A stretch of 63,864 nt of DNA, counting the filler, from Klebsormidium nitens (Eukaryota; Plantae; Klebsormidiophyceae), in the NCBI GenBank assembly GCA_000708835.1. It is 6 parts of 6 records of this genome, joined end to end, with 100 filler letters (N's around TTAATTAATTAA, not from the genome) between each part and the next. Parts side by side here need not be neighbours in the genome. Positions count along the whole stretch, not along the records: positions 1 to 24,561 come from DF237850.1; 5 more parts are not named here. One strand, written 5' to 3'. The notes beneath the pieces were generated by a model, which saw nothing but the letters and a program-made list of their open reading frames with translations, was not told the DNA's origin and ran no database searches. Shown here one piece after another: positions 1-24,500 of this stretch (positions within the stretch are counted from its first letter, which is position 1; every line of letters begins with the position of its first letter). The position numbers were made by a program, and so were the translations under genes.

Positions 1-119
1 ATATATCTCATACGGAGAACTTGCCAAACACCCGAGCAGAGTATCGAGCGAAGGCAGAGTACATGGGACACGCGCTGTCAACGGCCATAAACCATTACGA
101 GCGTCGGTTTTCACGTTGA
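1..119 (+). CDS. C-terminal end of a tyrosine recombinase (truncated by window start)
   Basis: Frame from nt 3 reads ISHTENLPNTRAEYRAKAEYMGHALSTAINHYERRFSR*, stop TGA at 117-119. A..MGH..ST...HY matches the second His and catalytic Tyr motif of tyrosine recombinases. Too short for the ORF track. Confidence 0.6.
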   Translation, partial: ISHTENLPNTRAEYRAKAEYMGHALSTAINHYERRFSR

Positions 120-1338
120 TCCGCAATTTTCAATCGGTGCGCGTTTTGTACTCAGGAGAAATTTTCTGCACTCGGAAGTAAGTAACAGCAGTTGCCGCAT
201 ATACAACATGTCTGGGGGTCCGGAGCCCCAGCCTCCAGATGCAAGTTCCAGCCAGCCCGGTAGTGCCACGTCAAAACGGTAGCCATTTACAAGAGAGTGA
301 CCCGGTCCTGGTCACTAGGCCTTAAATACCGTATACTCCGGACAGTACTTAAGGCTAAAAATCGAATAGCTGTCCCTCAGCCCTAAGTACTATACTGGTT
401 TTTCGACGTAAGTCAAACCGGGATCCGAACATTCCGGCGTACGTAATTCTAGCTTCGGACGTCCGCCCTACGGACTCAAATTTCCACGTGTCCCTTGACT
501 GGAACCCATGCCTAAACACGTGCCCTCATGTTCTCTCACTCTATAGCCTATAGCCTGAACTCGACTGAGGTCCTGACTCCAGACGCAGCACTTCACAACT
601 CACTTGTGCAAGGTAAGGGCGCCAGCAGGATTTGCGCATGTTTTCTACAAGAAGGCTGCCATTTGACGCGCTCATGTTATGTAGAATGCTGAGAGCACTG
701 CATTCTTACAAGTAGGCAGCTGACACTCATGAAGCCACCGTGAACTTGGGGTTGGACACCCTTGATTGACTTTGGCGCTGAGGAGCAAGCATGGCAGAGG
801 TGAATGCTGAAGCTCTTCCTCTTTTGCATGTTTGCAAGTCAGCAATTATTGGATGTTCAAAACATACCCAATGTGGGTCGAAATGTGTTCTGCACAATAT
901 TGGCTGCAAGGCAGGGGCGAATGCTCTCCCCTTTTGCTCATTTTGTGCCGGAAGTTAATGCTGGTGGCTAGGTGTGGTGCTTTGCTGCTAAATGAATGGG
1001 TAAGGTTCTGAAGTGGGTTGTGATGGTAGTGGTTATATACTTCACATTTCACAATATAAACTCAGTGTTCTTAGCAGACAAAGTATCCCTAAACTGGCAT
1101 GGCTTCCAAGAATGATGATGCCGTACAGGAATAGCAAAGACAGATGGCTCAAATGTAGGTGCAATGTTCAATGGTGTATTTTGTCTCCCTTTCTAGGTTG
1201 GGGGTACTCTCTAGGGGCCCCTTTTTGGAGCAGTCTCAACCGCGCCTGCCTCTTCTGTCTTTTAGCGCGAGTCTTACATATTTCAAGTGCTCAATCCGCA
1301 AATGTCCTTAATCTCTACGGGGCTACCAGCATACTATC

Positions 1339-2544
1339 TTAATCGGCTCCAAAGTCACCTTCCGAATGTCGACAGAGGAATGGTAGATTAAAGTTGCCAA
1401 GGTAATCTACCATTGGCTTTGGTTCTGCTGGCTGGGGATAGAGCACAACACGTTCGGTCTGATTGTTTGCCGGCACCGTTGGAGGTGTGCTCTGGTTAAT
1501 CCGTTTGAGTTGTTCCATCCTGTACTCATGGTCATATGCTGCCTGCTGCAGCTTTAGCTTCTCTTGCTCCAGACCCAGTTTTAACTGTTTCGTCTTGTAA
1601 CCCAGCTCCATCTGCTTCGTCTTTTCCCGTTCGATCTCTAGGCTATTGTCTTGAGCATCTGACATTGCTATATCCCTAGAAGTAGCTTGGCGGCACGCCT
1701 TTCGCATGAGGTTAAATAGCCTCTCCTCGGTCAGAGTCCCCGGCATGCAGGATGTCTCCCGTTGAACACTACTCCCAATCTTCAGAGGCTGTATGTTGTC
1801 CTTGATTTCTAGAATTTTGCGGAAAATATCCTCTGCTTTCTTCGGGTCATCTGCTTTCACCACATGGAGCAGCTCAAAAAAGTATGGCGGAGTGAAAGTT
1901 CGCTTGTGTGCATTGTATCGTGCCTTCAGATCTGTTGTCTGTCCGAATTTGCACAGTCGCTAAGGTTGTTGCTGGATAACTCCGATGTACAGGCACTTCT
2001 TCATATCATACGTCAGGAGACGTGCCTGCTCTCTGTCAATGCCCAACTGCTTCTTCTGCGTCAGCTCGATGCAGGCGTCTCGAATTGCGCGAAAGAACTC
2101 CCGCACCTTGTCGCCAATCTTGGTTGCCGCTAGCAGGGCAAAATGCTCGAAGGCTTGGGTAGTCATGTATTACTTGTCTACTGGGCGACCACCTTGGTGA
2201 AGGTTTTCATCCAGCACGGAGGCATTTTCAGACACCTGTCTAGAAAGCAAACTCCTCTCTCTTGTTACATTGTAGTCGACTCCTTCTTTAAAACGTCCAT
2301 TCTTCAGCTTTTTGCCTGCATTCGCTTTGCTACCGTATCCCAGAAACTTCCACGCACTGTCGAAGTCGATTAGAAACGTGTTCCTGTTGTCATTGAACGC
2401 TTTGATGAACATGGTTGCAAAGTTCTGATCTCCTTCAAACCTCACATCATGCATCGAAGGACGTGAGAGGTTCTGCCCTTGGCTGGTCTCTCTCGAGTAC
2501 ATGGCTTCCTTATACCACCTTCCCTCTAGGCTGACGGGTCCCAA
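1339..2544 (-). pseudogene. Virus-type AntA/MSV199-like DNA-binding domain + T5orf172 (GIY-YIG-like) domain + coiled-coil gene, interrupted by two in-frame stops
   Basis: ORFs 2170-2544, 1960-2166 and 1339-1863 share one frame. Read-through gives FLIDFDSAWKFLGYGSKANAGKKL...GGRPVDK*YMTTQAFEHFALLAATKIGDKVREFF...CLYIGVIQQQP*RLCKFGQTTDLKARYNAHKRTF...EIEREKTKQMEL. These motifs are typical of large-DNA-virus antirepressor-like/T5orf172 proteins. Confidence 0.7.
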
Positions 2545-2890
2545 ACCTCCGTTCTATGCAGAAACAGAACAAGAAAGAGGAGCCAGTAGAAGATGACAGT
2601 GCGACCATCGACGATGAGGTTGGTAATCAAGACTGTGTACTTCTGAGATCTACTTCCGCAGTGCTTGGTTTTTTCTGAGGCTTCTCCTCGAGAAGCTTGC
2701 ATCTCTGCCGAAGTCAGTTGCCTAGGCTTCAAAAGGCCTTGCTTGTATCATTCGATTTGGGTGCGCAAAGAACGGGCTCGATTCCGAAATCGGACCCCCC
2801 CGTGCAGGTCGTGCTGATCGATTCTACGCTCGATGACGACGCTGTTTCAGAGCCCAATGTTTGCCAGTCTCGGGTATGTTTTGCACTCAT

Positions 2891-3083
2891 ACTTTGTGAC
2901 CGTTGGAGCAACCGCTTGCTGAGGGCTTTTGATCTGTTTTCGTACTCTTTGACCGTTGGAGCAACCGCTTGCTGAGGGCTTTTGATCTGTTTTCATACTC
3001 TTTGACCGTTGGAGCCACCGCTTGCTGAGGGCTTTTATTCTGTTCTCATACTCTTTGACCGTTTGGAGCAACCGCTTGCTGAG
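2891..3083. repeat. 53-bp tandem repeat, about 3.6 copies
   Basis: Units start at 2891, 2944, 2997 and 3050. Consensus ACTCTTTGACCGTTGGAGCAACCGCTTGCTGAGGGCTTTTGATCTGTTTTCAT; no spacers. Confidence 0.95.
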
Positions 3084-4737
3084 CAACCAACGCAAGAAGA
3101 TGGATTGCGTTGAAATTCACGCAATGAATGGATGTAGTTTCTCGAACGTTCACCATCTGCGTCAAACATAGGTGGTGGGAATAGAAAAAGAGGAGCCTTC
3201 GACACGAGTACTATAACATAGCTTACACGATCTTCGAATTCGGGATCAGACAAACAATTGATTCATGTATGCCACTGGGAGCCTATGGCCCATGTGGGTT
3301 TGGCGTTCGAAAAGAAAACATCATGCACTCATTAAGTCAAGAAGCTTGAGCTCAAGTGCATGGCAAGCTAAGCCTTCATTTGGTGAGTGTCATATCATCA
3401 AAGCCGCACATGTAGCGCAGCTATATATGTTGGGCAGCCTGCATGGATCCATGACGAGCTACACTTGAATAAATTAAACATTGCTGTGTCACACAACATA
3501 TCTCCCGCAGACGTTGGATCCAATGTTCTGTCACGCACGCACGGTAAATTATGGCTTGCACGCCTTTGGCTGCACATATCCATTCATGCGCTCGCGACCG
3601 CGTCTTGGATCTGCATCCGCCGACGGTCATGCACAATGGATTCGTACCGCGGATGTTGCTGCAACACAAGCTAGACAACTCGGCCTTTGTCAATTGCCGC
3701 ATACCAAGGAAGGCATGCGTCCAGTATGTGTACACTAGGCTAGATGCCGAGATGATTTTCATCGATGCGGGCACCTCTGACTGGCAATGCGTCAAACATG
3801 GCACGATCTTACTAATGATCTGGTGTCTTGCGTGATGATTAACTGTCTCACGCGTGCCCGTGCATCGAAAGAGGATTGAGAGTCATGGTCTATTACGTCA
3901 TCAAAGCTTTGGAGAACAGACTTCGTGTGGGCAGAAATGATCTTCTAAACACAAGCAAAAGAAGAGGACTTCTATTCAAACTTCGTATCATGTTCTCTCT
4001 AAAAAGATATCCAGGCGTTCTCAAGAGCAATCTCATCAAGATACCTCAAACCTGGCGCTGGGTACACGGCCCGTGTCAAAACAAGTGTTGCAAACAAGGT
4101 GGTCTGGTGTGCATGATGTTAAATCTCTACTAGCTAGGATAAGGTACTTGACAAATCGTGCCGTAAGGTCATCTGGGCTCCAATAAGTGATCAATGCATG
4201 CGGTCAACACTAGTGGCTAACGAGAACAGGAGTACTCGACTAAGTAGTGCAATCAGAGCGCGATCAGGCGAGCCGTCTGGTTTTTGGGAGCTGACCTAGC
4301 CCTGAACTCGACCCCCTTCGACAAGAATCACCTGGTGCTGCCTGCGAGCGGTTGAAGAAGTGTGACTACAAGCAAAAAGTTGTTTTCAATCCTCAAGTAC
4401 CCGGATCCCTGACAATTAAACCTCTTCTTTGGAGATAGAGACCAAATAGATGAAGATCCGTTTGCGAGTAAGCAATTAAAACTTGTACAGAGACAACAAG
4501 TAATCATCTTTTTGATACACCTTGCTCAGTTTCATGAATCAAGTGTGCGAATCAAGCATCCCCGACCTGATTCCAACATACTAGATCAACAATGCTGGAC
4601 TTGAAGAGCCATATATTGCAAGAGGCCTCATAGCCAGCTTGAACGCTCTCCTTGAATAAAGTGGGTAGGTTGCAAGGGCGCTGAGGTCCACGATTGCTGG
4701 ATTTCTTGGCTGAAAGGTCGCCACTCTCCATCTCACC

Positions 4738-7700
4738 TTACAGCTTCAGTGCAACACGCGCGCCGACAAAAGCCCCAAGAACGAGTGCCGCGCCAAGTAA
4801 AACTTTCCGCACATGCCTCGGCTCCTGCAAAGAAGAGGACACAGCTTGAGAATACATCGCACCTCCAAATGATTGGTTCTGTGAACTGACGATATGTAAC
4901 AGAATCCAAGCGCAAACCCTTCGTTCTGAAACACTCACAGAAGTGGATTGGCATGCAGATTCACCCTACCATGCTCCTCATCCAATCATGCGGACGGCAG
5001 ACTTCGAAAGTGAATGACCTGAGGCACTCAAGAAGCTGGAATGCTTCTAAAGACATTTTGATCTGAACAAAGACGCCAGTACTCGATACACAATGCTTCC
5101 AGCTCTAGAAAGACTCAGCCACAAGCCTAGGCCTGGTTTCCTCCCTAACCTCTGGTGGCTGGTGCTCGAGTGCCTTGTCCTCTTTGCGCAGTATGGTGGA
5201 CGGCTCAGCTTCAGAAGCGTTTCCTGAAGTGAGGTGTGTAGGTTGTTGACCTAAGGTGTCGTCTGTAATATTGTCACCGTCAGCCACTCGCAAGCGACTC
5301 TCCTGTGCAACCTCGATTCCGCTCCGATCTTTGGTTTCCTCGAAAGATAACCTTCGATGGGGCGTTTGCTCTAGCGCTGTGGAGGACAGGGTCTGGTTTA
5401 ATTCTGTGCTAATCCGCTCCCCGCTCGACCGCCCCGCTTGACGCTCTGCATCTGTCTCCGCTGGTTTTCCGCAACCCAACGCCCCCACACTCGCCGCTGC
5501 TTTCCCCTCATCTTGATAACGGCTCCCTTCGATGGCTCCAAACGGAGTGCCGGGATCGAGCGGTGAGAGGGGTGACACTTGACCAATGGTTGAGGGAGTC
5601 TGCTGGCACGGCGCTTCAGCTAAGCCTTTCGGAGAACTGGGCCCCGAGCCAAATTGGAGTTCGTGCGAAAAGGTGGACTGAGTAGAGGTGGTGTTGATAG
5701 AAGAGGTTGAGTGGGGATCGGTGGCCTCCGACACTGAAGAGCTGCTCCCTTCAACCCCGAGCGTAGTAGGACTGAAGCCCGTCTCATATTTGCCGCCCTG
5801 AAAAGGATTTTTAGTCTTCATAGCATTCTTTGCAGGGAAGTGGTCTTCAAACGAAAGGCGGAGCAGACTGCCGTTCAAGGGTCATTAAGAACGCTGCTCC
5901 TGTCCTGCTCTGAATCATGAGCACAAAGTGCAGCACAGCTGCTCAGAATAGAAGTGAGGTAAACAGCAACATAGTCTCTTTTTAATAATCTCTTTTTGAC
6001 GGAAAACACTAAGGTCAGGGAGGACCACAGTAAGTCCAGGCACTACTACTCCGCTAAAGGAGCAGCAACAGGATTCTTCTTGGAAGGTCGGTGAAGCCAA
6101 CGGCACGTCCAGTCAAAGGCTGCTTTGCAGCACAAACTGACATATAATCCTCACCTCGGAACTGCCAAGAGATGGGGGAAAAGCCTTCAGTCTCTTCGAA
6201 GAAGAGGAATGCAGAAAAGCCTGCAAGTATAGCGAGATAGATCATGGAAAGGTAGAAAATCCACGAGTGTTTACAAACGTCTTTGTTGGACTGTCTGCTT
6301 GACACCTTAAGGTTTTCCAATAGCCTCAAACCCTTCTGCTGCAAAGCATGGATAGAGCTGGAGAGGAAAGCTCTGTAAAGTCCTACATAATGAAACAAGG
6401 ATGACAAAGCTTCATTTACGGGCCTTGCTCTGCACCCGGCAAGATCGATTCTGCTTGTTGAAGTCAATTGATTGCATTCCGTCAGTCTGGAAATCCCACC
6501 TTTGCTCGCAGGGGGGTGAATGCCTTCACAATCTCGTCTAGACTGGGGCGCTCTGTCGGTTCCCGCTGAAGGCAGCGCTCGATGAGCTGGAGCACAGTGT
6601 CACGATCCCCCTCCTCTGTCTCCGTGTATATGTCCTGAGGCACCTCAGGAAGCTCCCCCCTCCGGCCCACCCTGTACTTAACCTGGCGCTGTTGGAAGCC
6701 GTGGAAAGGAGGCCAGCCTGTAGCCATTTCAATGAGGATGCACCCAAACCCGTAGATGTCGGAGCGAAGATCCTTCACGCCCTGCAAAACATGCCATGCA
6801 GGTAAGCCGCAAGACAGCACTTTCCCCATCAAGCATAGTTAGACATTCAATCACCTTGAGCAGGCAGTTCCAAACTCCAACCGCTGCCGGCAACTTCACA
6901 ATCAAGGATGCAAGGATTGCCGATATGCACACAGGCAATAAGCAATACCTGCTTATCATGAGCACCATACCTCAAAAGGTAAAAGTCTTTCAACAACAAA
7001 GCTAAAGACGTCATTATAAGCTTCCTTTGAGAGCGAGCCGAGCTGAGCCATTCCTTGATTACCTTCCATGCCTCAGGAGCCATGTAGAAATGCGTCCCCG
7101 CCACAGAGACTCTGCTTGTGTCCTGCGCTTGTAAGCGACTTGAAAGCCCTAGGTCTATGATGAAGGGTTCGCTGGCGCCCAGCTTGAACATGATGTTCTG
7201 CAGACAGGAATTGTCCTCCAGCTCCGCTTGATGCAAGATCAGGCAAAGGGTTCAACAAAGTCGTTTCGAAGCAGAAAGACCACGAATGCTCCAACTTTCA
7301 TTGCATAAGAGCTTCAGAGAAGCCTTGCCGGAGCACACTCGTATAGTCAGCTGCTTCCAACCCCGTGCATGAGAGGGCCACAAGGATTCACTCCCTATTA
7401 TTAATTACCTGTTGAAAGATGGGCACAGACATATCAATCTCAAATGTGGACGTAGTGAGCCTTCTGTTTACCTCAGGCTTGATGTCTCTCATGAGGATCT
7501 TTTCATGATGCAGGCCGTTGAGAGCGTCTGCTACTGCCAACCCAACAGAGCAGAAGTCCAACCAGGGCAAGGGTTGGCCGCCAATCTTGTCCTTCAAAGT
7601 TCCTCCATCGTAGTAGTCCATGACGATCCCCACATCCTTTTTATCACTGGAACAAGCACAAGCTTCGCCTTTTGTAGCGTCTGTCACTACCACCAACGAG

Positions 7701-8379
7701 ATTGATCTTTTTGATCTTTTTCCAAGCACACAGCAGCCCCAGCATCTCCAGTGCACAACCTTCTGTTGCAGGGATACAGAAAGAATGCGGAAGCAGCCGG
7801 AGAAGCTCAGAAACATAGCATGCTACAAGCAGAAACAACACCCACCGGTAGATGCCATGGAGCATGCAGATTCGATGGCACTGGCTTCTTGCATGCTTCA
7901 GATTGAGAACTTCTGACAGGAAGGCTTTGACTTCTTGGCCTGTTCTGTTCAAACCATCCTTGAACAGCTTGAGCCCCACGGTGGTGCCACTGGGCAACCC
8001 CACTCCTTTCCTGGAGGAATCAAAGAAATAATAGGTGCTTTCAAGTGTCCACAGGATCTTGTCAAAACCAAACAGCATAAGGCTCTTCAGAAGGGTTGAT
8101 CACATGAAGATTGACACATTGCCCATTAGCAGCGGACTGATGCCATGGATACTGATTATATCTGAACAGCTCCACAATGGAGGTCAAGTTTCTTACAAAC
8201 ATGCTGACAATATGCCAATTCGGCTTGACTTACTTGACCAGTGTTACTGCTTTGTAGACCACCGTCTCAAAGCCTGGCCTCACGGAAACCTCCTCCTCCA
8301 ATCTCAGGTCAATCTCACCAAATAATGGCAGATCTTCGGTGACCTTATTGAACTCTTCAAGCCACAGTGGTTGGTCCAT
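4738..8379 (-). CDS. Multi-exon Ser/Thr (TKL-like) protein kinase with long S/T/E/P-rich tail and C-terminal transmembrane helix
   Basis: ATG at 8379 (MDQPLWLEEF...). Exons encode VGLKLFK, AFLSEV, VMDYYDGG, MRDIKPE|NIMF, IDLG, YMAPEAW, SDIYGFGCILIEM and RPSLDEI, joined by GT-AG introns. Low-complexity exon 5105-5878; terminal VLLGAALVLGAFVGARVALKL. The tail exon structure is approximate. Confidence 0.85.
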
Positions 8380-8586
8380 GTGACTTGAAGCAGCTCTCTG
8401 CCCCGACTTTGCACAAACAATCAGAACTTTTGGAAGACCGAAGAGTAGAAGGCCTGCATAATTGCAATCAGATACTTCTGCAGGTGCAATGGGCAGCCTT
8501 GCTCTTGAGAGTAGTACTCAACTCAGACACCTCTTTCGTCGATGAGCGAAGATGATGATGATGATGCCTCCGAAGTCAACTTCAAG

Positions 8587-8613
8587 ATCAATCAATCAAT
8601 CAATCAATCAATC
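8587..8613. repeat. (ATCA)n microsatellite in the intergenic region of the divergent kinase pair
   Basis: About 6.75 perfect ATCA units. Confidence 0.95.
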
Positions 8614-9196
8614 CTTTAAAGTCCCGTAGGAGCCATGGGTGGCTCATGAGACAAAATCTGAATACGGTATGTTCTCAATCCTAAATGCGTCTCGAATAAG
8701 CAACCCTAGCAACCTTTCGCTGATTACTTTGCCCTATGAAGATGCGTAGACTGCGCGGAGGATGCTCTCCGATGTATGCATGCATGCATGTTTGGGCTGC
8801 TGACAATGACCTAGGGGTCATCCAGTGTTCCACTTTGCCTTTGGGTGAAGTCGCATGCAAGAAAAGGCTCGAAGTTGGAACTGGAGGTCGGAGCCCTACC
8901 TGCTAGATGCAATATTATTCTGGTAACTCTAGCGAGGATTTAGGGCAGCGTGGGATAAAATAAGACGCCCGGGAGACGGGTAGGGTTGGCCCGGTGGTTA
9001 GGGGGGTACGGGGTGCCGAGCAAGTGTTTATTCTAGGTTAGGGTTATGATCCTTGTCACCCGGGCGATTCATATCCTGTTCCACGCTGCCCTTATTCCAT
9101 GCTAGAGTATAAATACTGAACACTGTCGTGATTTCCCTTCTCAACACGGTTCTACGGTATACCAACACAAAAAGATTCAAGGCGACGGAGATTAGA

Positions 9197-12100
9197 ATGC
9201 ATTCTATCGACGCCATGGCGTCGATTCTGGGAGTCGTCACGGGTGTCATTGGGATTGTCGACTTTGCCATCAAGCAGGTGACAAAGATCTCCGAGCTGGT
9301 CAAGGAGCCCAAGAAAACAATTCGCAAATGCAAGGAGTTCGCGGATGAGCTGGTCCTTACAGAACCTCTGCTGCAATACATCAAGGAGTATTTCAGAGGA
9401 GTCCCGGCCGATAGCGCAACCATGGGCATCCTGGTGATTCTTTCTCAAGCGATCTGGGATGCCAGAGTCACAATCGAGGAGGTCCATCATCTTTCGACCT
9501 GGAAAAGATATCGCCGGGCAAAGGCCATTGGGGCGAACCTTGAGCGCTGCATAATCCGTGAGAATCCCTATCACATGGATCCTTCCATCCAAGAAACACT
9601 GCACAGATTGCAGCCTGGTCTGTTTTTTGAAGTTCACCATAATCTGCTGATCAGGCAAGGCTGTTAACGTCTGGATCCGAAGTCTGCCCAGATGAGAGCA
9701 CCAAGAAGCGCTGGATGGAGCTTATTCTTGTATACAGGATTACACCTTCAGTCACAGAGCTGTAATCTGGTCTGAGCCCTCTCTAATTCCGCTGTCGCCT
9801 GCTTCCAGCACATCATGAAGGTGCTTGAAGCTGCATTGATCTGCCCCCCGTGGTGATTTTATGTGCAGAGTATCGCGCCGCTCTGGATCGCCTGGTGCTC
9901 CTGCAGACCTTCAGGACGATGATCTCTGTTGATGCGCTGCGTCAGCTCAACGGCAGCAAGGAGAAGTTGAAAGCTCTCGAGAAGGAAGTGAAGAGCATTC
10001 ATTCTGAGCTGGCGGAAGTCAGCAGCTCTTTCTCAGCAATGCCTGATGTGTTGGCTGATTCAGCACCTCGGTCAGGTCAGATTAAGGAGAGGCTACAACA
10101 AACCCAAACTGTTGCGGAGCTGCAAGCCAAAGTCAAGGAAATACAGCAGAACCCCAGACTTGTGAAGGCGCTACGAGTGCTGGGCTTGACTGACGAGAAT
10201 TCATCTGCCGAGTTGGAAAAGCTCCAGCAGTTGCTGCGGGACGAGAAGCTCCGTGAGTTTGATGATGAGTATTTGGAGCCTGTAGAGGATGCAAACAAGC
10301 TGGTGTTCAGGAGCAAAGACACGGAATTTCAACGGTTCAGATTGAAGAAAAGGTAAGGTGCTTACTTGCACTCCTTCCACACAGTCGGTTTCAAGCCATC
10401 GCTCTTTGGGATGGTGGAGGTGCCAGCCAAAGTCTTCCCACACCATCTGTTGTCTTGGTATTGGCATCTTTAAATGCCACTGAAACCAGAGGTAGTGAAG
10501 GTCAACCCTTGACAACCTTCAAATCCATGCTGGTTGGAGAAAGGATAGGCAAGTCAAGCAACAGTGAGCTAAATGCAAGCCATCTGCAAGCCAAGCCAAG
10601 TGCAAGCTATTGGGCCCCTTTCTGCTGTCCATAGCCCACAGCTTTGGCCTGACTTGTAGCGTTTCTCAACCTCAATGATGTGAAGATGTGCTACATGTCT
10701 GCTGACAGACTGCATGCTTCTCTCTAGAGGTTGTGATGCGAATCCCTTGGCTTACCTGGCCATGTTGTTGCTTGATGGAAACTAATCGACACCGGATTGT
10801 GTGTGCAGTGTGGATCTCTTGACCGAGGGCACTCTGGTCATGGTGAAGTTCTTCCTGGGGGCTGCTACAAATGCAAGGGGCGACGAACTGCGGAACTTTC
10901 GGATCCAAGTGCAATATCTACAATGGGTCGCATCTCAAGGCAACACCTGCAAAATTCTTGGTTTTTACAGGTGGGTGCCTTCTTGAAAGCAATATTCCCA
11001 GTTCAGGAGTTCACAAGTGTGGGGCAACCTTTATTTCTGCCCAAGCTATCTTCGGATGAGGTCTTCAACATGTGTTTGCTTGCTGACAATACAGTAATGC
11101 ACACTACCCTTGATGAGGTTTCCGTACTTGTAGATTCATCCGGTACCTGAAAACAGTTCTCACCATTTCAAGACAGGCCGTTGCACTTATTCTTTTGGGG
11201 CCTATTGCATGTGCCTGTTATAGAAAGGATGAACGCTAGACTGGACTTGATCTCTGGCACTGAATTGGCTGTTGACAGGAGGAGGCACGACTTCGGCATT
11301 GTGATGAAGAACTACGAGGGCTTTACCCTGGAGAGTCGCATCCGCGAGGGAAAGCTCCAGAGATCCGAGTACCTACATGTGGCCTACCTCTTGGCTCAGA
11401 CAGTGGACGTGCTGCACAATGCAGGCTTGATCATCGGCGACCTTTCTCCGCGGGTGAGACTCGGTCTCTAAGCCAAAGACTGTCCTTTTAGACCATTTTG
11501 CATGCATCCCCTGGTTGATGCTTTTCCCAAGCCAAAGACTTCAAGGTCTTGCAAGCGTTGACCCTGACAATCTGCATTTTTGGGCGTTTAGTGCAGCTTC
11601 AAATCAGTCTCAAGCAAGTATTGAGTTGCTGGGCTGAGGCGATGGCCCTCCCCTTTGCAGGGCATCTTTCTGGAATTCAACATGCGGCCTGTGATTGCCG
11701 ACTTTGGCCTGTCCAGAGTAGCCGCCATGTCGTTCATCAGCTTCAGTGTTGCGACTGCTGAGGAGAAGGACGTGGAGCCCTACCTAGCACCTGAAGTATG
11801 GATGGTGAGTGGGCTTGAAGAAAGGCATTATTTTTTTCTTGGACGTGTATGCGGGATGCCACCTTCTATTGCTCGCAAGACCTTGCAGAAAATCTCCCTG
11901 CCATGATGGTCGCCTTCTTGAGGAGGATTGTCAATCTCGAATTCAAGGATCTGGATAATTTGCTTTGTTTCTGGTGCTTGACAAGTTCTCTTTCTCCTTT
12001 GTATCATGTTCTCTTTCAGCGCCCTGATCCGTGTCGTGAGTGCTTTTGCTTGTTCAAGTCCCTATGATGATTGATATTCAAGGAGGCAATGACTCTAATC

Positions 12101-12410
12101 ATGCTGATCCCAGGACCATCCAACACCGGCAAGCGACGTGTGGAGCCTAGCTTGCATTCTGGTGGAGATGATCACCGGCGTGCGGCCCCACAACCTGGTC
12201 CCCGATCTTGAGGAGTGGGTTGGCGAGGCGAAGCACTCTCCAAAGCTGCCCGCCCCTTCCGAGATAGGGCCACCTACTGGGATTGGGCCTGCTCTTCATG
12301 AGACACTGCAGGCTTGCTTCAAGCCTGATGCTGAGCAGCGTTTACGGCTCGGTGGCTCTGATGGGTTGTTGCGACGTCTTGAGATCTACCATGCAGCGGT
12401 GAGTAGTTGA
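9197..12410 (+). CDS. MLKL-like protein: N-terminal four-helix-bundle (MLKL/RPW8/HeLo-like) domain, helical linker and C-terminal pseudokinase
   Basis: Exon 1: MASILGVVTGVIGIVDFAIKQVTKISEL...ELVLTEPLLQYIKEY...LVILSQAIWDARVTIEEV...WKRYRRAKAIGANLERC. Exon 2 (9867-10352) is helical/coiled-coil. Kinase exons: LVMVKFF, GIVMKNYEG, IIGDLSPR|GIFL, IADFGLSR, YLAPEVW, DVWSLACILVEM. Small 3' exons may follow (e.g. 12620-12643). Confidence 0.75.
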
Positions 12411-14059
12411 CGCTCAATTCAACCCCTACAAGACTGGTTGACTGGAAGGTTTCTTTGGTGCATTACTGGGAAAAGCATGAGCCAATGCTGCCTTGAGTGT
12501 TTGCGCTATGTAGCAATCTGAGTTACGTAGTGTTCCAAGCGAAGCCTGATCCAAAAATCAGCATGCTGCGTACCAACACTCCAACTATCATTGATGTTCA
12601 AAGTTATTGTGCTTGACAGGAGGTGAGCGGAAGGCCTGAGCAGGTGAGTATTGTTGCGGACACGTAGACTTGACGTTCTGTGTGTATAAAGGACAAATCA
12701 GGTTGTAGTCTGTGTTTGTCGAGTATCAAATTCTTTTGCCCTTGGAGCTTCATATTGCCTTGATGATTCATGGATAGGTGCATAAAGAGGTCTACACATG
12801 AATCAGCCTGTTCTTGGCAAGTAGCAGTTTCTCACAGGTGTTGAAGGTGTCTTGTTGCGCTAAGGCTTCAAGGTTTGGTTTGGGACAAGAGGTTGCCTTT
12901 CCCTCCGCCCGGGGCTTGCATTGAAAGGTGGCTCGCTTGCTTCACTCTTGCAGCTGTGAACCTGAAGAAGAGCTTGACACAGTTGTCTAACCATATTCAA
13001 TCACGTCTGAGCATTTGCAATAAGGTGTACGCCAGGAAATTTTTTATTCTTTTTTTTTCTTTTTTCCGTCGAGTCTTTTTAATGTGGAGATCATGCTTTT
13101 TTGGAACTCCCAGGCCTATGGAAACTTCAGGCTAGGCATCTAAGAAGTGATTTATATGTTATCTCAAGGAATGTTGGTTTGAAGTTGTTCAAAAAGTCTC
13201 TAAGATATTGTAGTGGCTCAACTGACCGCTCAAGTCTAGCTGTTTGCTCTAATCTGTTCATATACGTGTGCATGTTTGAGATATTAGACAGATTTTCACA
13301 TGGCAAGCAGCCATAGCAGGCTACAATGTCGACCTTTTAACATGACGGCAGCTATAGCAAGCTGCATCATGTATCAACCATTGTCACACCCCCGAGCAGG
13401 GCTCTTCGGTGCGCTGTCCGAAATATACTTGTGTGTAGATCTCGTCGCTTTGACACGATGACCAGCGCCGAGTTGGTGATTGCACTCCTCATCCTCTCCG
13501 ACGTAACTTTAGCACTTGCATGTGATAAGGAACCGGAGTGGAGTGAAAATTGGTTGACGTTGTCATGATAGGGTTCGCCGCTAGCTCCTTGATACTCAAT
13601 AGTACACGGTACTCGCATGCATGTACGAACCGTTGGACTCAGGGCTTCAAGCCATAAGCATTGATCTTCAAATGAATCGTCATGTCGATTGCTTGCCGCA
13701 AATTAAAGCTTCATTTGACGAGCGCGCATCTGATACCACTCCCAAGGGCTTGCCAACCATAGCCACGTCATGCATTAGTCTAGCGGCGACAGATTGATGA
13801 TCAGCTTGCACTTTACACGCATACTGTTCAACAACCAGCAGCAGCCAAGCAACTCGATCTGATATGATCAATAGCCCTTTAAAGCTGGGCCGGGCCATGC
13901 TCCTACACCTTCGAAGGCTGCCCATAAGATACCCCAGTCTCGAGCAGCTTGGATAGCACGGGGGACAGCTGCCTGAGGTCCGCAAACTGCCCGTCCGAGA
14001 GTGTCACCGGCTCAAAGAGACGCCGCGCCAGCAAGAGCCACAGGATCACGCTCTGGAGG

Positions 14060-16222: not shown

Positions 16223-18805
16223 GATTTCATATTGGCTGGAATGCCTTTTTGGAAGAGCCTTATTGACAAACATGGCGAGCCTGACACTTTGAAAGCGACG
16301 ACTCCTAGTGGCGGTTTTCACTACTACTTTTCGTTTTCGGGCACCCTCAAAGATGGACTGAGGTCGGGAAAGAACTTCGTTGGTGTGGACGTCGATGGTC
16401 AAGTCTAAGGGATTGATGGCCGCGGCGAAGGAGGAATCGCATTCGCTCCACGAAGTTCGCTTGGTGAGGGTATAAAATACGAATGGAATGTCTCGCCGGA
16501 GAGGATCAATATTTCGACCGCTCCGACATGGGTGATCGAATTGATAAACGAGTGTGCCAGACGAGCTGGTCGTAACGGACAGATAAACACTCAAGGTGCA
16601 TTTCAAGCAATGCAAAGCTCAGAACTCGAAAAGCATGACGAGTTGCTTCTGCATTCTTCCTTTGCAGACGAAGCAGATTTGAACAAAGATTCAATAAACA
16701 CCCGAGACGCACGGGCATATGAGAAAACAATAGCAGATGCAATGATGAAGTTGCTGAGGGATGCTGGGTTGGACGAGAATGTTCAGTTCTCCGGAAAGGT
16801 CTCTTCTCGTGGCCCGTTTGGTTCACTATATTCCTTCGTCTGCAAAGGCCCTCGAATGTGCATTCATGGCCATTGCCACAACGGATCCAACAACTTAACA
16901 TTGATAAAAAGAGGCTGGGTCGTGCTCTATCGATGCTTTGGATCTGAGTGTTCGGAGAAGCCGCTTGTAGAAGTTGGAACTCTCAACCTCGCAGACTCAT
17001 TGCTAGATGCGAATCCTACAAAGTTGCATCCGACATTTGACCACTCGGTGTTTCCTAACAATTGCAAGGTGTTATCCGAGATAGAACGCCAATATTATGT
17101 GGATCTCATCAAACGCAACGTGATGCAACGCTATCGAGGGATGGCTGCCATTTTCAGTGTGATCTATGCCGTTGATGGACGCATACTTGCCGAAGGCAAA
17201 AACTTCCGGTATTGGAACTCACGACGCTGGCTGTCAGATGGTTCCTATCATGTGCAATCAGTTTTCTCGAGCCACATTTCGAGAATATTGAAATGGTATG
17301 AGAATCTCCGATTGACGGCATTCAAGCACGAAGTCTGGAAGCTTACGAAGGAATCTGGAAAATGGGGTTGCATAGCAGAAGCTTCGGAATACGCACTTCC
17401 AGAATGGGCAACCCGACCACAGAGCGAAGAAGAGAAGAAAGCATGCCGGCGAGCGTGGGAGCTCGTCTCAACCACATTACCTTTCCCTTCGAAAGGTGAC
17501 TCTACATGTCAGCTCATAGATCTGACACGTGGCTCTGAAGTGCGTATCTGTCTTGAACACGTTCTCAATTCGTTACAGATCCGGGAGGAACTGGATGCTC
17601 TGATGGACCAAGTCAACCCGTACCTATTTGCATGTGCAAACGGTACGCTGGAAACTACGACTGGACAATTGCTTGCACCACATCCTGCACAGCTGTGCTC
17701 GCGAGCTTCAAAGGTAGCCTTTCGTGGAATGCCTCAAGGCGAATCCCGCTTCGCTTCTTTTCTGTTGGATTGCTTCAACAACGACTGACAGGTTCTTGAT
17801 TGGTATAAGATGTATCTCGAATACTGCATGACGGCCGACACCAGCGAACAGATCTTTCTAGTAAAGCAAGGTGAGGGGAGCAACGGAAAAACACTCACGA
17901 AGATAGCATCCTTTGAGATCTTTGGTTCGTATGCTGTTGTGATGAGCAAGGATGTCATCATCGAAGCAGGTGGCAAGCGGTCCGCTGGTTCAGCTTCGTC
18001 CCACCTCATTGCGTTAAAGGGAGCAAGGCTGGCCGAATCGGATGAGTCAAACGAAAAGTCCGTTCTGAACGAAGCAACAGTCAAAGAGTACTCCGGAGGC
18101 GGCTCCGTTACAGCAAGAGAACTTCAAGGTAAGCAAGAGACCTTCATGGTGACGCATAAAGCAATTTTGAACACCAATTACAAGCCCGTTATGGAGAACG
18201 TATCTTTTAGTCTCATACGGCGTATGGCGCTTCTTCCAATGACTGTGGCTTTCAAGTCGGCTGAAAAAGTCAATCCGAGAAAATCCAGAGAGAAGCCCAA
18301 AGATCCTACCTTGGAAGCTTACTTGAAGTCTGATGAAGGTCGAGAGGATGGACTTTCGTGGATCGCAGCGGGGGCAAAGCGCTACTTCGACTTGAAACGG
18401 GCGAATCCTGGCGTTCTGGTCCTTGAAAAGCGCCCGAAGGCTATGGAAGACGCCCTGAAAGCGTATGTCAACGACAGCGATATTGGCAAACGATTCATCG
18501 AAGAATGCTGCGAGTTCGAAGAGTTGCAACAAGGAGCACGTGCGAAGTGGCACTTGGCACTAGGCGAAAGGCTGGGTGACGCGTTCCGGACTTGGATCAG
18601 AGAAGAAGAGTTATCGAGTTCACTCACCGCTCAAGCACTGAAGAAACGAGTCGTACTATATGCTGATGGCACCAATCATACAGTTGAAGATGGCCGTTTT
18701 ACAGACAAGACAGTGCAAGACAAAGGCCAATTCAAAGGCCTTAGCGGGGTGCGTCTAAAGGCTGCCCTTTGCAATCAAGGCAGTGGATGTGGGTGGGGAG
18801 CTTGA
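16223..18805 (+). pseudogene. Primase-polymerase (PrimPol/Prim-Pol) + Zn finger + D5-like SF3 helicase of viral/MGE type, two in-frame stops
   Basis: One frame: TTPSGGFHYYF...GQV*GIDGRGEGGIAFAP...APTWVIEL (Prim-Pol domain, TAA at 16406-16408); CIHGHCHNGSNN...YRCFGSEC (Zn finger); YLFACANGTL (D5_N); NND*QVLDW (TGA at 17786-17788); Walker A GEGSNGKT; LKGARLAESDE; ILNTNYKP; RRM. Intronless. Confidence 0.88.
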
Positions 18806-18922: not shown

Positions 18923-19318
18923 TTATTTGCTTTTTATTATATGAAATAAGAAAGACTTAGAATCTGGGTCTTTTGGGCTGTTGGTCTGTGGCTTGATGAC
19001 GTCAGCAATTTGCCCACAGAGATACTTTGATCTAGAACTTTGACAGTTTGGACAATTGCATGTAACACTCCGATTCTCGATCATTTGTGCGTCTAATAGC
19101 TTCATCATGGTACTTGCCCGGACGTTTTTACCTTGCTCAAATCGATGGAGAGCCTTTCTCAAACACACGGCATCTTTGTTCAAATTGTAATATCGTTTCG
19201 ACCACTTACAAAAAAGCTCTGGATGATCAGTTCGATACTCATGCTCGTACTGGCGCCTGCGTTCAATGGCAGATTCAGATGGCACTCTGCAGAGAGCCAT
19301 TATATTACAAATTGGCAC
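18923..19318 (-). CDS. Small basic hypothetical protein, virus-like, with a CxCxxC motif
   Basis: 131-aa intronless ORF convergent with the helicase: KRYYNLNKDAVCLRKALHRFEQGKNVRASTMMKL...CNCPNC. Confidence 0.45.
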   Translation of the reverse strand: MPICNIMALCRVPSESAIERRRQYEHEYRTDHPELFCKWSKRYYNLNKDAVCLRKALHRFEQGKNVRASTMMKLLDAQMIENRSVTCNCPNCQSSRSKYLCGQIADVIKPQTNSPKDPDSKSFLFHIIKSK

Positions 19319-19630
19319 TACATAAGTTTTTTTGCAATCTGGACGAACAAAAACATACCACCTGTACCACCTCGAACCCCCAGATTCTATCGTTCCGTTT
19401 TTCAGGTGACTGCGTTTTTGTATTACGAATTGGCACTACATAAAGTATATATGTACCATCGAACCACCTGTACCACCTCGAACGATGAAGTTCTACCGTT
19501 TCCTTTTTTAGGGTTTGGTTTTTGAGAGCACTTGGAATTCGATGGTACGGTGGTACGGTGGTACGTAAAAACTTTATGCAGTGAGCTTTGCTAATATATA
19601 TATATATATTAGATGGTACATGGTGGTACA
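19303..19630. repeat. Iteron-like array of direct and inverted GTACCAC/GTGGTAC motifs (putative replication origin)
   Basis: TATTAC(A/G)AATTGGCACTACATAA occurs at ~19303 and ~19421, and ACCACCTGTACCACCTCGAAC at ~19357 and ~19463. Inverted TGGTACGGTGGTACGGTGGTACG lies at ~19543 and TGGTACATGGTGGTACA at ~19614, flanking an (AT)n run. Confidence 0.7.
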
Positions 19631-19783
19631 AAGAAAGGGTTCTTCCCTTCCACGTAAAACATCACACAAAAACATGATTATACCCCGAAAGCATCAGAAA
19701 AAGCAAAGAGCGCGTTGGGATCGATTTTTTTAACTCATTTGACGGCTGTATTTTACCTAAACTTGCTAAGCTCAGTCGATAAC

Positions 19784-22700
19784 TTACACATTGATTACAA
19801 GGAAACGGACCGCCTCCGTCCACAAATTCGCTCTACCGGCTATCAGGATCTTTGCGTTGTCGACCCGTGTGAGTTCCGAGTTTCGTCCGCTGATAAGATT
19901 AGCTAATATTACCATGAAGGCTTCTAGTCCGGAGTACCAGCCGAGCGTGGGCCTAAACTAACCAGGAAAGAATTGCAGCTTTCGACCGCAGAAGTATTGA
20001 CCCAGCGCACCGCGTCGTAGTAATCTGATACAGAAGACGGAAATAGATTAGCCTGGTAAATGCTCATAGCGATTGCGGTTGGCATGCAGAGTCAGCGATA
20101 ATAAGCGTTTGCGGGACAATGCAAAGTTGGTGTGCACGCTTGGGTGTCAGTCAAACGTGTTGCTGTGGTGTTGGAAGGCTGAGGCTTACCGGGGTTGAAC
20201 GAGGGTCCACACTTGTGGGCCTCAGCTCCCATGCGCTGGAAGTGAAACCTGCAGATAACACGTTGACGGTTAGATTTCGACCAAGCGCCTTTATTACCCA
20301 ACGCCCTTTTCTCGGAGCCAAGTATGCATCTTCCAAAACCAGGTTGGAGGGCCAGTGGGGGGCACCCTATGCAGCATGTCAAGGGACGGCGGGTATGTCA
20401 AAAGCACATGAGATCCAGTGCGGCTCAATGGCAAAAGTTGCAGGGCCGAGTCGAAGCTCTGAAGTCATCAAATCCAAAGAGGTTGAAAGAACGTACCTGT
20501 CGACCAGGAACCGGACGTCGGCGAAGAAAGCCGGTTCTCGCCTCATGCAATACGATTGAAGCTTGCACGCGTTGTCATAGAACATGTACCGGGGGAGGTT
20601 CCGTCGATCCAGTCGAGTGTAGAGCACGGTGAACGGATCGCGAGGTGACTCGCCACGGAGCATCGCGTGAAAACCGTAGATCACACGGTGCGGGCAACAA
20701 AAGACGAACCCGCCCTTGGTATGATTTTGCAGTCGCTTCGCGGACTTCGATCCCCCCTTGGAGGCCACCTCCGCGTCAAACCTGCCCACCGTGAGCCCGC
20801 TCTTGCACCGGTGCTCTTCGCTGCCCTCGATCGAGCGGCCTAGCTCGTCCTCGAAGGGCTTATATTGGGGAAGGGGGCGCTTCTGTTCCCACCCTGGCAG
20901 AGGGTAGCAACCGAGCACGCGCTGCTCCTTGCAGAAGGAGTGCTCTAGGGGAAGGGCTCCGCATGGTTCACCGTCCGGATTCAAGCCCAGCCGCTCGTTC
21001 AAGAGCTCCGTCTCAGGTACGTTGAGCGGGTACAACGCCGTAGAGGGCGCTGTCAAGCTCTCGACACCGGGGAGCAGGGCATTTGCTCGCGTCTCCCAGA
21101 ACTCGACGGCCTGCAGACAATCTGCGGTTCGGGTCCACGGGCGCTCCACGAAGTTGCGTGCTGCCCAGACGCAGTAGTCGAGACCCTCGATAGCGGACAA
21201 CGGCCAGCCAGCTCGTCCCACCCCGAGCCCGACAGCACCTCGGCCAAAGAGGGTCAGCCGATAGAGATGGTGCAACGCTGGGGTGAAATACCAGGGGAAA
21301 ACGAATCCGAAGTGGTCTAGCAACCGCCCCAGAATGGGGCGTGCTCAGCGAGGATCGCCTTATCATCTAGGTTGGCAACTCCCCCTAGGAGTAGCTTCCT
21401 GACCACGGCCAGAGCCTGCTTATGCTGAATCAGATTGCTGTCATCGGAGACCGACTGTGGCGTGCCGAACCCGTAGAGTAGCTCCGCCCATTTTGCGGGG
21501 CATCGCGGTGGTCGTAAAGGGGAAGCTCGCAGGGCCTCCGTCTTGATCCCCTCTAGGAGCGCCATCATTGCACGGTTCTTCGAACGGATCTGCCCAAACT
21601 GGTCAAGGAGAAGGCGCCGCCGCTCGAAGAAAAGCACTGGGTCAGCCTCTTCGTCGACGGGGTTCGGCACGAATTCTGAGGCCACCTGCACGTCCTCGCG
21701 GTCGAGTGCGGCCTGCAACTTGGAGATGAGGCGGCTAGAGACAGGAGCGTTGTCCATGAAGGTAGTTGGCCTACTACCTAATTGTACATTCAAGGCGAGC
21801 AATTGTACGGTTCCCAAGAGACAGCCTAGATCGGACGGTTGTGAATCCGGGAACAAATCGTTTTCCAGATATCAAAAATGCTTAAGTATTGGAATCAATT
21901 TTTGTTCCCGATTCGGAGGGGTCTACGAAATCCAGTCACGCCGTGCACGCGATCCTACCAGCCTCGTTGGACTAGCTTCAAGTCAGCTCACCAGCAATTC
22001 GTCGAACTCCACGTTGCTCAGCTTGGCTCCTAGATCAGGGTCGTCAGGATGATGCTGGCTGAAGCGCGCGATCAATGCACGCAGCTCCGGTTGGTGCACC
22101 AAGCGCCGCTTTAAACCTCCTCCACCCAGGGCGGCAGCACAGAAGTTCACCCCCGGCTCCATGAGCTTCACGACATTCACCCCCTCGGCGTCTTGACTCG
22201 GTGCCGTAAACGGTCGCAATTGCGCCGCGCTGGACCCAGCGAGCCCCCCCTTTTGTCGCCCGCCGTCGGCACAAGCCAGCCCGGCGATGCCGTCGCAGAG
22301 AAGTACCTCCGGGTGGGGCCCGCAGATGCTACAACATTCGAGAATGGAGCGTCCACATAGCTTGAAGAAGCCGAGACTCGCCCTCCGCCAGGTCCGTTGG
22401 ACACAGGCTTGGCGCTAGGTGAGTAGAACTGGCGGACGGCGTTCTTGGCCTCGATAAGGGCGTTACAAGCAGAACCGGTGCCTTGCACGCATCGCAGCAA
22501 GAGTTGGCAAGCCGCTTGTGTGACGATGATGCTTCTAGTCCAGGCGTACAAACCCAATGCCTCTCCGTTGAAGTGCACCGTGTGCTTCTCCGGACAAGTG
22601 CAGCAGTAGATGCGAACTTTCACCTGCACGCAAAAGTTCACATATTGACTAAGCAAGATCTACCTCAAGCGTGGGCCATCGGACAAGAAGCAAAACAAGA

Positions 22701-24500
22701 GCACAGAGAGGTTAATACTGTGATGGACACGGGGTCCGACTTCTAACAAACAGCAGATCTACTAGAAGATGAGACCCTGAAGCCATAGAAACGTTTTGGA
22801 CTCTGAAATATCGAAGATCTGCATAACCAAGACAAGCTGGCACCCACCTCTTGCGACCAGTCCAGCGAGTAGATGTGAGACGTCTGCATCAAGCTCAACC
22901 AGCCCGTTCCACAGGGGGGCGGCACTTTGGGGCAAGGAGCGCACAATCCCGCCATTCTGCTCAGTTCCTCAAAATCCCGCGCCACCAGCTGGCTCACTCT
23001 CACCGGCTGCTTCAGCAGAGTGACCGGGGGGTCATGAACGGCCAACCCGTCTGTAGGGCGCACTAGCTTTGGAGTCTCGACCTGGATGCCCTCGGCGCCC
23101 ATGGGCATGACAACAGCAACACGTGCGGGTTCAACGTGTAGGCACGCCGTCGAAGGGCAAATGCAACTGCCGCATATGCGGATGACACGTGGCCCTTGCC
23201 CCCCGGCCGAGCATGTTGACGGCCCACCCTCCCCAAGGTCCGCCACATCTCCATGCACATCGCACGTTGCTTCTACCAGTGCCTGAGCTGCAAAGAAGGT
23301 TTTAGACCTCCGTTTCACCCCCCGTTGTGCAGACCCTGTGACCAGGGCCCCATTCTCCATCTCGGCTCGCGGACGCTTCCCAGTTGCGCTGCTATTCGCA
23401 GGACTACAGCACCGGCCTTCGCAGGGCTGCCTGTCAAGACCCACCCCACCGAACAGCGAGAGATGCTGCTTGCAAAAGCAGGCGACACCCTTGCATACTG
23501 CGTCGTGCCGCTCCCCCGCGACAAGACCGAGGAGATAACGCTCCTCATCCGTGAGGGCCTCCAGCTCTTCCTGGCTTCGCCGACTGCACAACTCCCTTCA
23601 CCAGCTTGCGGGGGAGTGGAAGCGGCGTGCTCCTTGCCAGCCCGCACCTCACCGTCCTTCTGGTGCAGCCATACTTTGGCCCGCTCCAACTGCAAATCTG
23701 AGAAGAGACAGCCCTCCAGTCTCCTCCACCCCTCTCTCCTCTGCAGCGCTCGTTTGACCTCCTGAAGGTGACTGCAATCGGTCGTCTTGCTGCAGCCTGC
23801 ACGCCTCCCCTCGCAGTACCACTCGAACTCTGCCCCCGCGCTGAAGTGCACCATCGTCCTCTTAGGCGAGGTGGAACCCGCATTCCAGTACACCCCGAAC
23901 ACTCTCTGCCCCACGCTACTGCACGGCACCTCCACCACCCGTTGCCCCTTCTGAAATGACCGGTGGCTTGATTGCCGACGTTCCTGGAGCGCTTGTAATG
24001 CCAGTTTGTGAACGCAAGCTGCGCCAAAGCTCAAACGGCCACGATCGCACGTGCAACTCGGGTTCCCCATCGTGTCCCAGTACACCGTCTCGAGCAAGGC
24101 GTTGCTCTTGGTGGGTCGCCCCAGAGGCTTGGGCCTCGCAGCGTTGTGGTTCCACGCGGTCATCAGAAACACAGAGCTGCTGGAACCCTCCTCGTCGATG
24201 CTATAGATTGCGCAATCGCCACTCATAAGGATGGTCACGAACCGTCCAGCTTGAGCCACAAGCGTGAGCTGCCCGTCTACATCTCGTTCTTCTTCTCTCC
24301 TATAGCGAAGCTGCGAGGAGGAGCTCGGAGTTCATGGACCAGTCAAAGGTGAAGTGGTGCCTGGTGGCAAAAACTTTGATCCGCGTGATATCGAGTGCAC
24401 GAGTCAATCTACAGTCTAGATGTGACGTCTGCCCTAAAGCCTCAGCTATAAAGCGGCAATACGACCAGAGAACGAAGCGGAAACTCTGTCGCCTATGCAG
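19784..24500 (-). mobile_element. Kyakuja-Dileera-Zisupton (KDZ) transposase gene with SWIM zinc fingers and Cys clusters, frameshifted
   Basis: SWIM CTCDRGRLSFGAACVH; Cys-rich segments; IYCCTCPEKHTVHFNGEALGLYAWT. Catalytic core HTKGGFVFCCPHRVIYGFHAMLRGESPRD...YDNACKL...DR|FHFQRMGAEAHKCGPSFNP|DYYDAVRWVNTSAVESCNSFL (spliced). Frameshifts near 21320 and 19965, among others. The 5' end runs toward the gap at 24562; termini not located. Confidence 0.85.

Follow-up and report, generated by a model that had tools for sequence, protein, structure and literature searches.

Scaffold DF237850.1 of the filamentous streptophyte alga Klebsormidium nitens (assembly GCA_000708835.1) is complete at 24,561 bp and forms positions 1 to 24,561 of the stretch of DNA analysed here (the window, 63,864 nucleotides, whose numbering is used throughout). 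Its deposited annotation comprises four genes, two of which contain introns, encode kinase-fold proteins and are transcribed divergently: a minus-strand gene, whose coding sequence runs from 8379 down to 4296 and specifies 526 amino acids (aa), and a plus-strand gene encoding the 540-aa protein GAQ91999.1. The exons of both were worked out by hand from three-frame translations and GT-AG sites (Table 1). The two kinase domains are paralogues, and the pair goes back to an inverted duplication of old date; the plus-strand product has a domain layout reminiscent of MLKL. The original prediction had described the two genes as a kinase and MLKL-like pseudokinase pair, separated by a spacer of ~820 bp and extending from 4738 to 12410, and had read them as a linked activator and executioner of cell death. 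The divergent arrangement was borne out, with 817-835 bp between the start codons; the minus-strand ATG lies at 8379, the annotated plus-strand ATG at 9215, and a further in-frame ATG upstream at 9197 gives the shorter distance. The annotated genes reach slightly further than the interval proposed, to 4296 and 12959.

Paralogy is evident from both the proteins and the gene structures. The kinase encoded jointly by exons 1-5 of the minus-strand gene (301 aa) aligns with GAQ91999.1 at 34% identity over 194 aa (BLASTP, 91.7 bits, E 5e-25). When scored like for like with phmmer (5.8 billion proteins, equal database size), this neighbour reached 79.3 bits and the next best match of GAQ91999.1 reached 55.2. 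Three introns are common to both genes, each at the same aligned residue and in the same phase: the first, in phase 2, falls within the Arg after G(I/F)Y, and the second and third, both in phase 0, follow KPE/SPR and APE(A/V)W(K/M), respectively. A fourth intron has an equal phase in both genes at positions two codons apart, and the exon between the first two shared introns measures 175 nt in both. The duplication must be old, because no DNA-level remnant of the inverted repeat was found and no trace of an N-terminal domain or brace, either 5' of the minus-strand gene or elsewhere on DF237850.1, was recovered by tblastn. The bundle and coiled coil that precede the plus-strand kinase domain were either gained by that copy or lost from the other. 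As duplication explains the head-to-head layout, selection for a co-regulated module is not required to account for it. The pair reads as a divergent STE/TKL-like kinase family by its sequence, the best PDB matches of a two-paralogue profile being ASK1, CTR1, TTK, MLK1, and IRAK4. Full-length and profile searches for further relatives returned weak matches, mostly to bacterial-type Ser/Thr kinases (at most 63 bits), and did not return the 526-aa neighbour.

Table 1. Exons of the two divergent kinase-fold genes, the spacer between them, and the annotated genes of DF237850.1.
Feature	Coordinates	Strand	Content
Plus exon 1 (residues 1-114)	9215-9557	+	predicted hydrophobic Gly/Val/Ile-rich helix 1 (MASILGVVTGVIGIVDFAI), helices 2-3, start of helix 4
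Plus exon 2	9869-10352	+	remainder of predicted helix 4, predicted coiled-coil 'brace' (~136-270), first kinase strands, glycine-free
Plus exon 3	10809-10970	+	β3 Lys (VMVK, K289); αC helix with Gln for Glu (RIQVQYL)
Plus exon 4 (175 nt)	11279-11453	+	hinge, degenerate catalytic loop IGDLSPR (I382 at 11433; D384 at 11439-11441)
Plus exon 5	11661-11804	+	Gly for catalytic Asn; DFG, Ser-rich activation loop, APE
Plus exon 6 (C-lobe)	12114-12398	+	Pfam Pkinase E 0.0032 (exon alone)
Annotated plus 3' end	12620-12959	+	micro-exon EVSGRPEQ from 12620, terminal piece to 12959; annotation alone
Minus exon 1	8234-8379	-	ATG at 8379, short N-terminus, degenerate Gly-loop RPGFETVVYKA; donor GTAAGT
Minus exon 2	7846-8010	-	β3 Lys (VGLK), αC Glu (FLSEV)
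Minus exon 3 (175 nt)	7472-7646	-	hinge, catalytic loop MRDIKPE (M156 at 7492-7490)
Minus exon 4	7063-7197	-	catalytic Asn (7197-7195), DLG, activation loop, APE
Minus exon 5 (C-lobe)	6500-6781	-	Pfam Pkinase E 3.3e-10
Minus C-terminal tail (~225 aa)	4296-5881	-	mostly a 258-codon open frame, 5881-5108; short terminal exon, stop 4298-4296
Divergent spacer	8380-9214	.	GC 0.48; 817 bp to ATG 9197
Annotated 77-aa model	791-2975	+	deposited annotation
Annotated 526-aa kinase	4296-8379	-	deposited annotation
Annotated 540-aa 'protein kinase-like domain containing protein', GAQ91999.1 / A0A1Y1IR90 (= P0001)	9215-12959	+	deposited annotation
Annotated 998-aa model	14119 to beyond 22959	-	deposited annotation; no Pfam domain

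The minus-strand gene has canonical splice sites between its kinase exons, and its Pfam Pkinase match spans exons 3-5. The original prediction had credited it with all catalytic residues. The β3 Lys (VGLK), the αC Glu (FLSEV), the catalytic loop MRDIKPEN, DLG and APE are indeed retained, but the Gly-loop keeps only its middle glycine (RPGFETV), HRD has become MRD, and DFG has become DLG. With such mild deviations, the product is plausibly an active Ser/Thr kinase. Its C-terminal tail is rich in S/T/P/E/G and poor in hydrophobic residues (62% S/T/P/G/E/Q/A); the exact splicing of this region is ambiguous, two models being compatible with the annotated 526 aa.

A separate observation concerns the C-lobe exon of this gene (6500-6781), which, compared with all PDB sequences, scores highest against the pseudokinase domains of vertebrate MLKL (38 bits, E 1.4e-8), followed by ASK1 at 31 bits. 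A specifically MLKL-related kinase family was considered and rejected, as the match rests on a 94-aa C-lobe of the active copy and the margin is small. The signal is absent from the plus-strand gene and gone in the two-paralogue profile, and is not read as ancestry.

The six-exon model of the plus-strand gene matches GAQ91999.1 exactly across 531 residues. The last nine annotated residues derive from tiny 3' exons that lack independent support; a simpler 3' end would be read-through past 12398 to a stop at 12408-12410. The kinase fold occupies residues 284-514 (Pfam E 2e-18), and the protein ends ~10-20 residues beyond it. Its best PDB sequence matches are MAPK (49 bits), RAF, and PknB, and the C-lobe exon alone finds TTK best, at 18.7 bits. 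The catalytic loop is broken, as had been proposed: IGDLSPRG stands in place of HRDLKPxN and aligns with HRDMKPSN of solved kinases, the His, Arg, Lys, and Asn being gone and the Asp kept. In addition, the αC Glu is replaced by Gln and the region of the Gly-rich loop contains no glycine at all. With these losses, the domain probably has little or no catalytic activity. The label 'pseudokinase' thus fits the degenerate motifs, but not the classical K/D/D rule, since the VAIK Lys (K289, in VMVK), the HRD Asp (D384), and the DFG Asp (D402) are all present, together with APE.

N-terminal to the kinase domain, residues ~136-270 are predicted to form a coiled coil, with sub-threshold matches of coiled-coil type (BBS7 hairpin, NPV P10, SMC-like LmuB/JetC). 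Nothing beyond such noise was found for residues 109-260 in Pfam, PADLOC, and NCBIfam, and the PADLOC and NCBIfam scans gave generic kinase and SMC-like coiled-coil matches and nothing else. Residues 1-135 are predicted to be all-helical, with helices at 4-30, 32-47, 50-60, 67-91, and 95-143. The AlphaFold models on which this prediction rests were computed in single-sequence mode, as no homologues were found, and reach pLDDT 48 for exon 1 alone and pLDDT 60 with pTM 0.48 for residues 1-145. Residues 1-19 (MASILGVVTGVIGIVDFAI) have a Kyte-Doolittle hydropathy of 2.14, the peak of the whole protein, with G/A/S-xxx-G spacing, and correspond to the hydrophobic helix at the extreme N-terminus of HeLo-like/SesA domains, which is required there for targeting to the membrane; a like role in this protein is putative.

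The N-terminal domain is an orphan. An exhaustive phmmer search with exon 1 against 1.84 billion representative proteins returned the protein itself and one spurious repeat protein (P0002), which was rejected as a homologue: it consists of 889 aa in ~13 tandem units of ~68 aa, and the 20-residue match recurs in each copy. A word-indexed search with residues 1-135 at E<=10 returned self only. Residues 1-270, compared with all PDB sequences at E<=10, matched only three short peptides, of designed or coiled-coil type, and neither animal nor plant MLKL, and no Pfam match to DUF1221, MCAfunc, or RPW8 appeared even at E<=10. The sole family hints are two sub-threshold Pfam matches, both aligned N-terminus to N-terminus: SesA (PF17107; E 0.013-0.06, 14-16 bits against a cut-off of 26.3; residues 9-76 on profile positions 2-66) and PF17111 (Helo_like_N, now PigL_N; E 0.035-0.12, 12-14 bits against a cut-off of 27.2; residues 4-58 on positions 3-57). 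SesA and Helo_like_N are Pfam families that align with the executioner domain of human MLKL (Wojciechowski et al., PMC9815663). These matches are treated as a lead, and a true HeLo-type homology has a chance somewhat short of even. Foldseek searches with the N-terminal model found generic four-helix bundles, the FAT domain of FAK, ligand-binding domains of chemoreceptors, and designed bundles (TM 0.43-0.65); with this low-confidence query no match reached E<=0.001, and the top 50 included neither MLKL nor HeLo structures. The model is thus compatible with a four-helix bundle (4HB) without being specific for one, and the fold search is indicative only. Of the 4HB N-terminus claimed in the original prediction, the all-helical character stands as a prediction, but the weak models and their generic structural matches do not secure the bundle itself.

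Given an orphan N-terminus on a degenerate kinase, the plus-strand gene might be a duplicate in decay or under neutral drift, or mis-joining might have produced the 5' part of the model, the architecture then being without biological meaning. The gene is a single-copy orphan with no homologue, its kinase motifs are degenerate, and the annotated 3' micro-exons are doubtful. However, all six main exons are open, with GT-AG at every intron between them, and the frames around exons 1 and 2 are open for 184 and 175 codons. The predicted helix 95-143 crosses the exon 1/2 junction smoothly. The coiled coil and the first kinase strands share one continuous exon, and since their junction lies inside it, this fusion is genuine and not the product of a mis-joined gene model. 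Decay or mis-joining is therefore considered highly improbable.

In its order of domains, the plus-strand protein resembles vertebrate MLKL: an N-terminal helical bundle (modelled at pLDDT 60), a helical or coiled-coil brace, and a C-terminal degenerate kinase. MLKL-type switches keep the β3 Lys and have lost its usual αC Glu partner, and the same combination occurs here. An apparently active kinase is also at hand as a candidate partner. However, the N-terminus has no sequence similarity to that of MLKL, which is also outside the top fold matches, and the kinase domain is nearest to MAPK, RAF, and PknB, the MLKL-like C-lobe being found instead in the active neighbour. Neither the N-terminal domain nor the pseudokinase domain places the protein in the vertebrate MLKL family. 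The minus-strand kinase differs from RIPK3 in having no RHIM, although its catalytic residues are intact; a motif scan for the core [IV]Q[IVLFC]G found no match in either protein, including the kinase and its tail. Unlike RIPK3 and MLKL, moreover, the two K. nitens genes are paralogues of each other.

Comparison with plants and fungi gives a similar picture of shared layout and divergent parts. The plant MLKLs are a DUF1221/HeLo-brace-pseudokinase family of seed plants in which a Ser-rich extension follows the pseudokinase domain (Mahdi et al., bioRxiv 10.1101/681015). GAQ91999.1 shares their overall layout and comes from the green lineage, but it matches none of DUF1221, MCAfunc, and RPW8 and has no Ser-rich C-terminal extension, the S/T/P-rich tail belonging to the minus-strand kinase; on both its N-terminal domain and its C-terminus, it falls outside the DUF1221 clade. 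In monocots, 4HB-kinase fusions have arisen repeatedly and independently (e.g., R3AK, Pm13), and in wheat the R3AK MLKL has an NLR sensor as its genomic partner (bioRxiv 10.64898/2026.08.07.743466). These cases are a precedent for recurrent fusions and for MLKL-type genes in functional gene pairs, although the partner in wheat is an NLR and not, as in K. nitens, a paralogous kinase. They also qualify one premise in the background of the original prediction, which had given seed-plant MLKL-like proteins no accepted upstream kinase and had taken head-to-head linkage as typical of immune pairs: paired NLR/MLKL genes and repeated 4HB-kinase fusions are now described in monocots (bioRxiv 10.64898/2026.08.07.743466). 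In fungi, HELL-kinase and HELL-pseudokinase proteins are known (PMC12881547). The fungal HeLo-like/SesA domains (HELLP, relatives of HET-S) begin with a hydrophobic helix at the very N-terminus and continue with amphipathic ones, as predicted here, and the HELL-kinase fusions likewise join an N-terminal domain to a kinase-like domain in a manner reminiscent of MLKL. However, the K. nitens N-terminus scores 12-16 bits against Pfam cut-offs of 26-27, the phmmer search of 1.84 billion representatives found no fungal or other relative of it, and neither an amyloid motif nor an NLR partner was noticed in the open reading frames (ORFs) scanned on DF237850.1.

A dedicated RIPK3/MLKL-like module would require the minus-strand kinase to phosphorylate the activation loop of the plus-strand protein, leading to its oligomerisation, membrane permeabilisation, and cell death. 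The MLKL-type domain order and the opposite-strand neighbour, an apparently active kinase at a distance of 0.8 kb, are consistent with such a module, as are the hydrophobic first helix with its sub-threshold SesA/Helo_like_N matches and the Ser/Thr-rich activation loop. Paralogous kinase domains often heterodimerise, and MLKL receptors of wheat do occur in pairs, albeit with an NLR partner. However, the adjacency is already accounted for by duplication, neither protein has a RHIM-like motif, the N-terminus shows no detectable relation to MLKL, HeLo, or plant MLKL in the PDB sequence and fold searches, and no orthologue was found in the databases that would show the pairing to be conserved. Such a dedicated module is unlikely. 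A more ambitious version, in which a HeLo-type bundle held in check by the coiled coil and pseudokinase and triggered by the head-to-head active paralogue would form a self-contained, independently evolved necroptosis-like module, is a degree more doubtful still. What survives of the MLKL-like reading is the layout beside an apparently active kinase and the two sub-threshold family hints; similarity to MLKL, DUF1221, and RHIM are all missing, and an activator-executioner link between the two genes is speculation. Searches for literature on the accessions, or on MLKL in Klebsormidium, found nothing specific.

A regulatory role unrelated to cell death would have a parallel in another class of proteins. 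Paralogous kinase/pseudokinase pairs such as RAF/KSR, and the cereal tandem-kinase proteins, originated by duplication, and the pseudokinase may act as a regulator or decoy. The K. nitens locus shares with them an active kinase and a degenerate paralogue derived from duplication; it differs in that the two are separate divergent genes and the pseudokinase copy has an added N-terminus of helical bundle and coiled coil. The plus-strand protein might be a membrane-anchored or scaffold pseudokinase, serving as an allosteric regulator or decoy in the manner of KSR and RAF. Its N-terminal helix would then either anchor it in a membrane or form a dimer interface, oligomerisation would fall to the helical and coiled-coil segment, and the target would be the active paralogue or another kinase. 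The hydropathy of residues 1-19 exceeds the usual transmembrane threshold of 1.6, the coiled coil is long, the fold matches are to generic scaffolding 4HBs such as FAT domains, and no death-domain family is matched significantly. Set against this are an Asp (D16) within the hydrophobic stretch, the HeLo-type nature of both of the best N-terminal family hints, and a domain order that is complete as in MLKL-type proteins. We regard the scaffold role as a possible, if doubtful, alternative.

The explanation to which we give a slightly better than even chance is that a lineage-specific, highly divergent kinase gene underwent local inverted duplication long ago and that an independent fusion made the plus-strand copy MLKL-type in layout. 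Independent fusion, and not descent from animal or plant MLKL, is the most likely source of that layout, and while an MLKL-type layout is plausible, the resemblance to MLKL is one of layout only. A separate algal fusion is the more plausible because 4HB-kinase fusions are recurrent in monocots and HELL-kinase and HELL-pseudokinase proteins exist in fungi. Under the duplication and fusion scheme, the minus-strand copy would have stayed a probably active Ser/Thr kinase with a near-zero N-terminal extension and a long, putatively disordered S/T/P-rich tail, and the plus-strand copy would have lost the Gly-loop, the αC Glu, and four catalytic-loop residues (His, Arg, Lys, Asn) while carrying a bundle of ~135 aa and a coiled coil of ~135 aa. 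If MLKL, its plant counterparts, and the fungal HELL proteins are taken as a guide, the N-terminal bundle may be restrained by the pseudokinase and coiled coil, which together would serve for switching and oligomerisation. A signal at the kinase-like domain, for instance a phosphorylated Ser-rich activation loop or a bound partner, might then release the hydrophobic first helix and allow it to engage a membrane; the partner could be the neighbouring paralogue or another protein.

Several points weigh against this explanation. For the minus-strand kinase, a Hanks-type kinase of bacterial origin (P0046, 94 bits), encoded on a contig with two-component genes, is about as close as its neighbour, which means that 'closest relative' holds only from the side of the plus-strand gene and that introns and adjacency carry most of the case for paralogy. 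As the Lys, catalytic Asp, and DFG of the plus-strand protein are kept, its presumed inactivity is unproven. The SesA and PF17111 matches lie below threshold, and coiled-coil noise in the same protein reaches similar E-values. The N-terminal model is of low confidence and resembles generic bundles rather than MLKL or HeLo, and since the N-terminus has no homologue anywhere, purifying selection on it is not evident. Kinase-like domains fused to 4HB/HeLo-type executioners are known from animals (MLKL), seed plants, and fungi, apparently with many origins. If the algal case is true, kinase-gated 4HB executioners extend to streptophyte algae, and the design would have emerged again outside land plants as a new variant and not a new category; the duplication route would also explain how an activator/executioner pair originates. 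A single orphan locus from a single genome, whose homology signals are weak, is no evidence for algal necroptosis.

The remaining observations concern the spacer and the flanks of the pair. Just 5' of the plus-strand start codon, the spacer contains a 40-nt imperfect inverted repeat (8926-8965 and 9069-9108, 78% complementary, 103 nt between the arms), which might be the footprint of a small mobile element or have a regulatory function. The original prediction had placed the pair between virus-like remnants, a description that applies to the right side only. On the left flank (1-4300), several ORFs of 80-175 aa occur, and none of those tested had a Pfam match at E<=0.01; remnants on both sides were therefore rejected. 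On the right, a long intronless frame on the plus strand (16409-18802), interrupted by one in-frame stop (17786-17788), specifies a D5-like primase-helicase of virus type: its first part matches D5_N (E 4.9e-10), and its second part matches the PHROG 'DNA primase' (E 1e-33) and contains a GxxGxGKT P-loop. The annotated 998-aa minus-strand model overlies this frame, which looks like the remnant of a viral or virophage/polinton-like insertion. Beyond it, from 19000 to 24561, composition shifts abruptly, GC rising from 0.43 at 19-20 kb to 0.57-0.62 over the remainder of the scaffold, where several long ORFs overlap on both strands and a weak KDZ-transposase match lies on the minus strand (20379-21323, E 0.0086). 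This part of the scaffold may be a transposon-rich or foreign segment.

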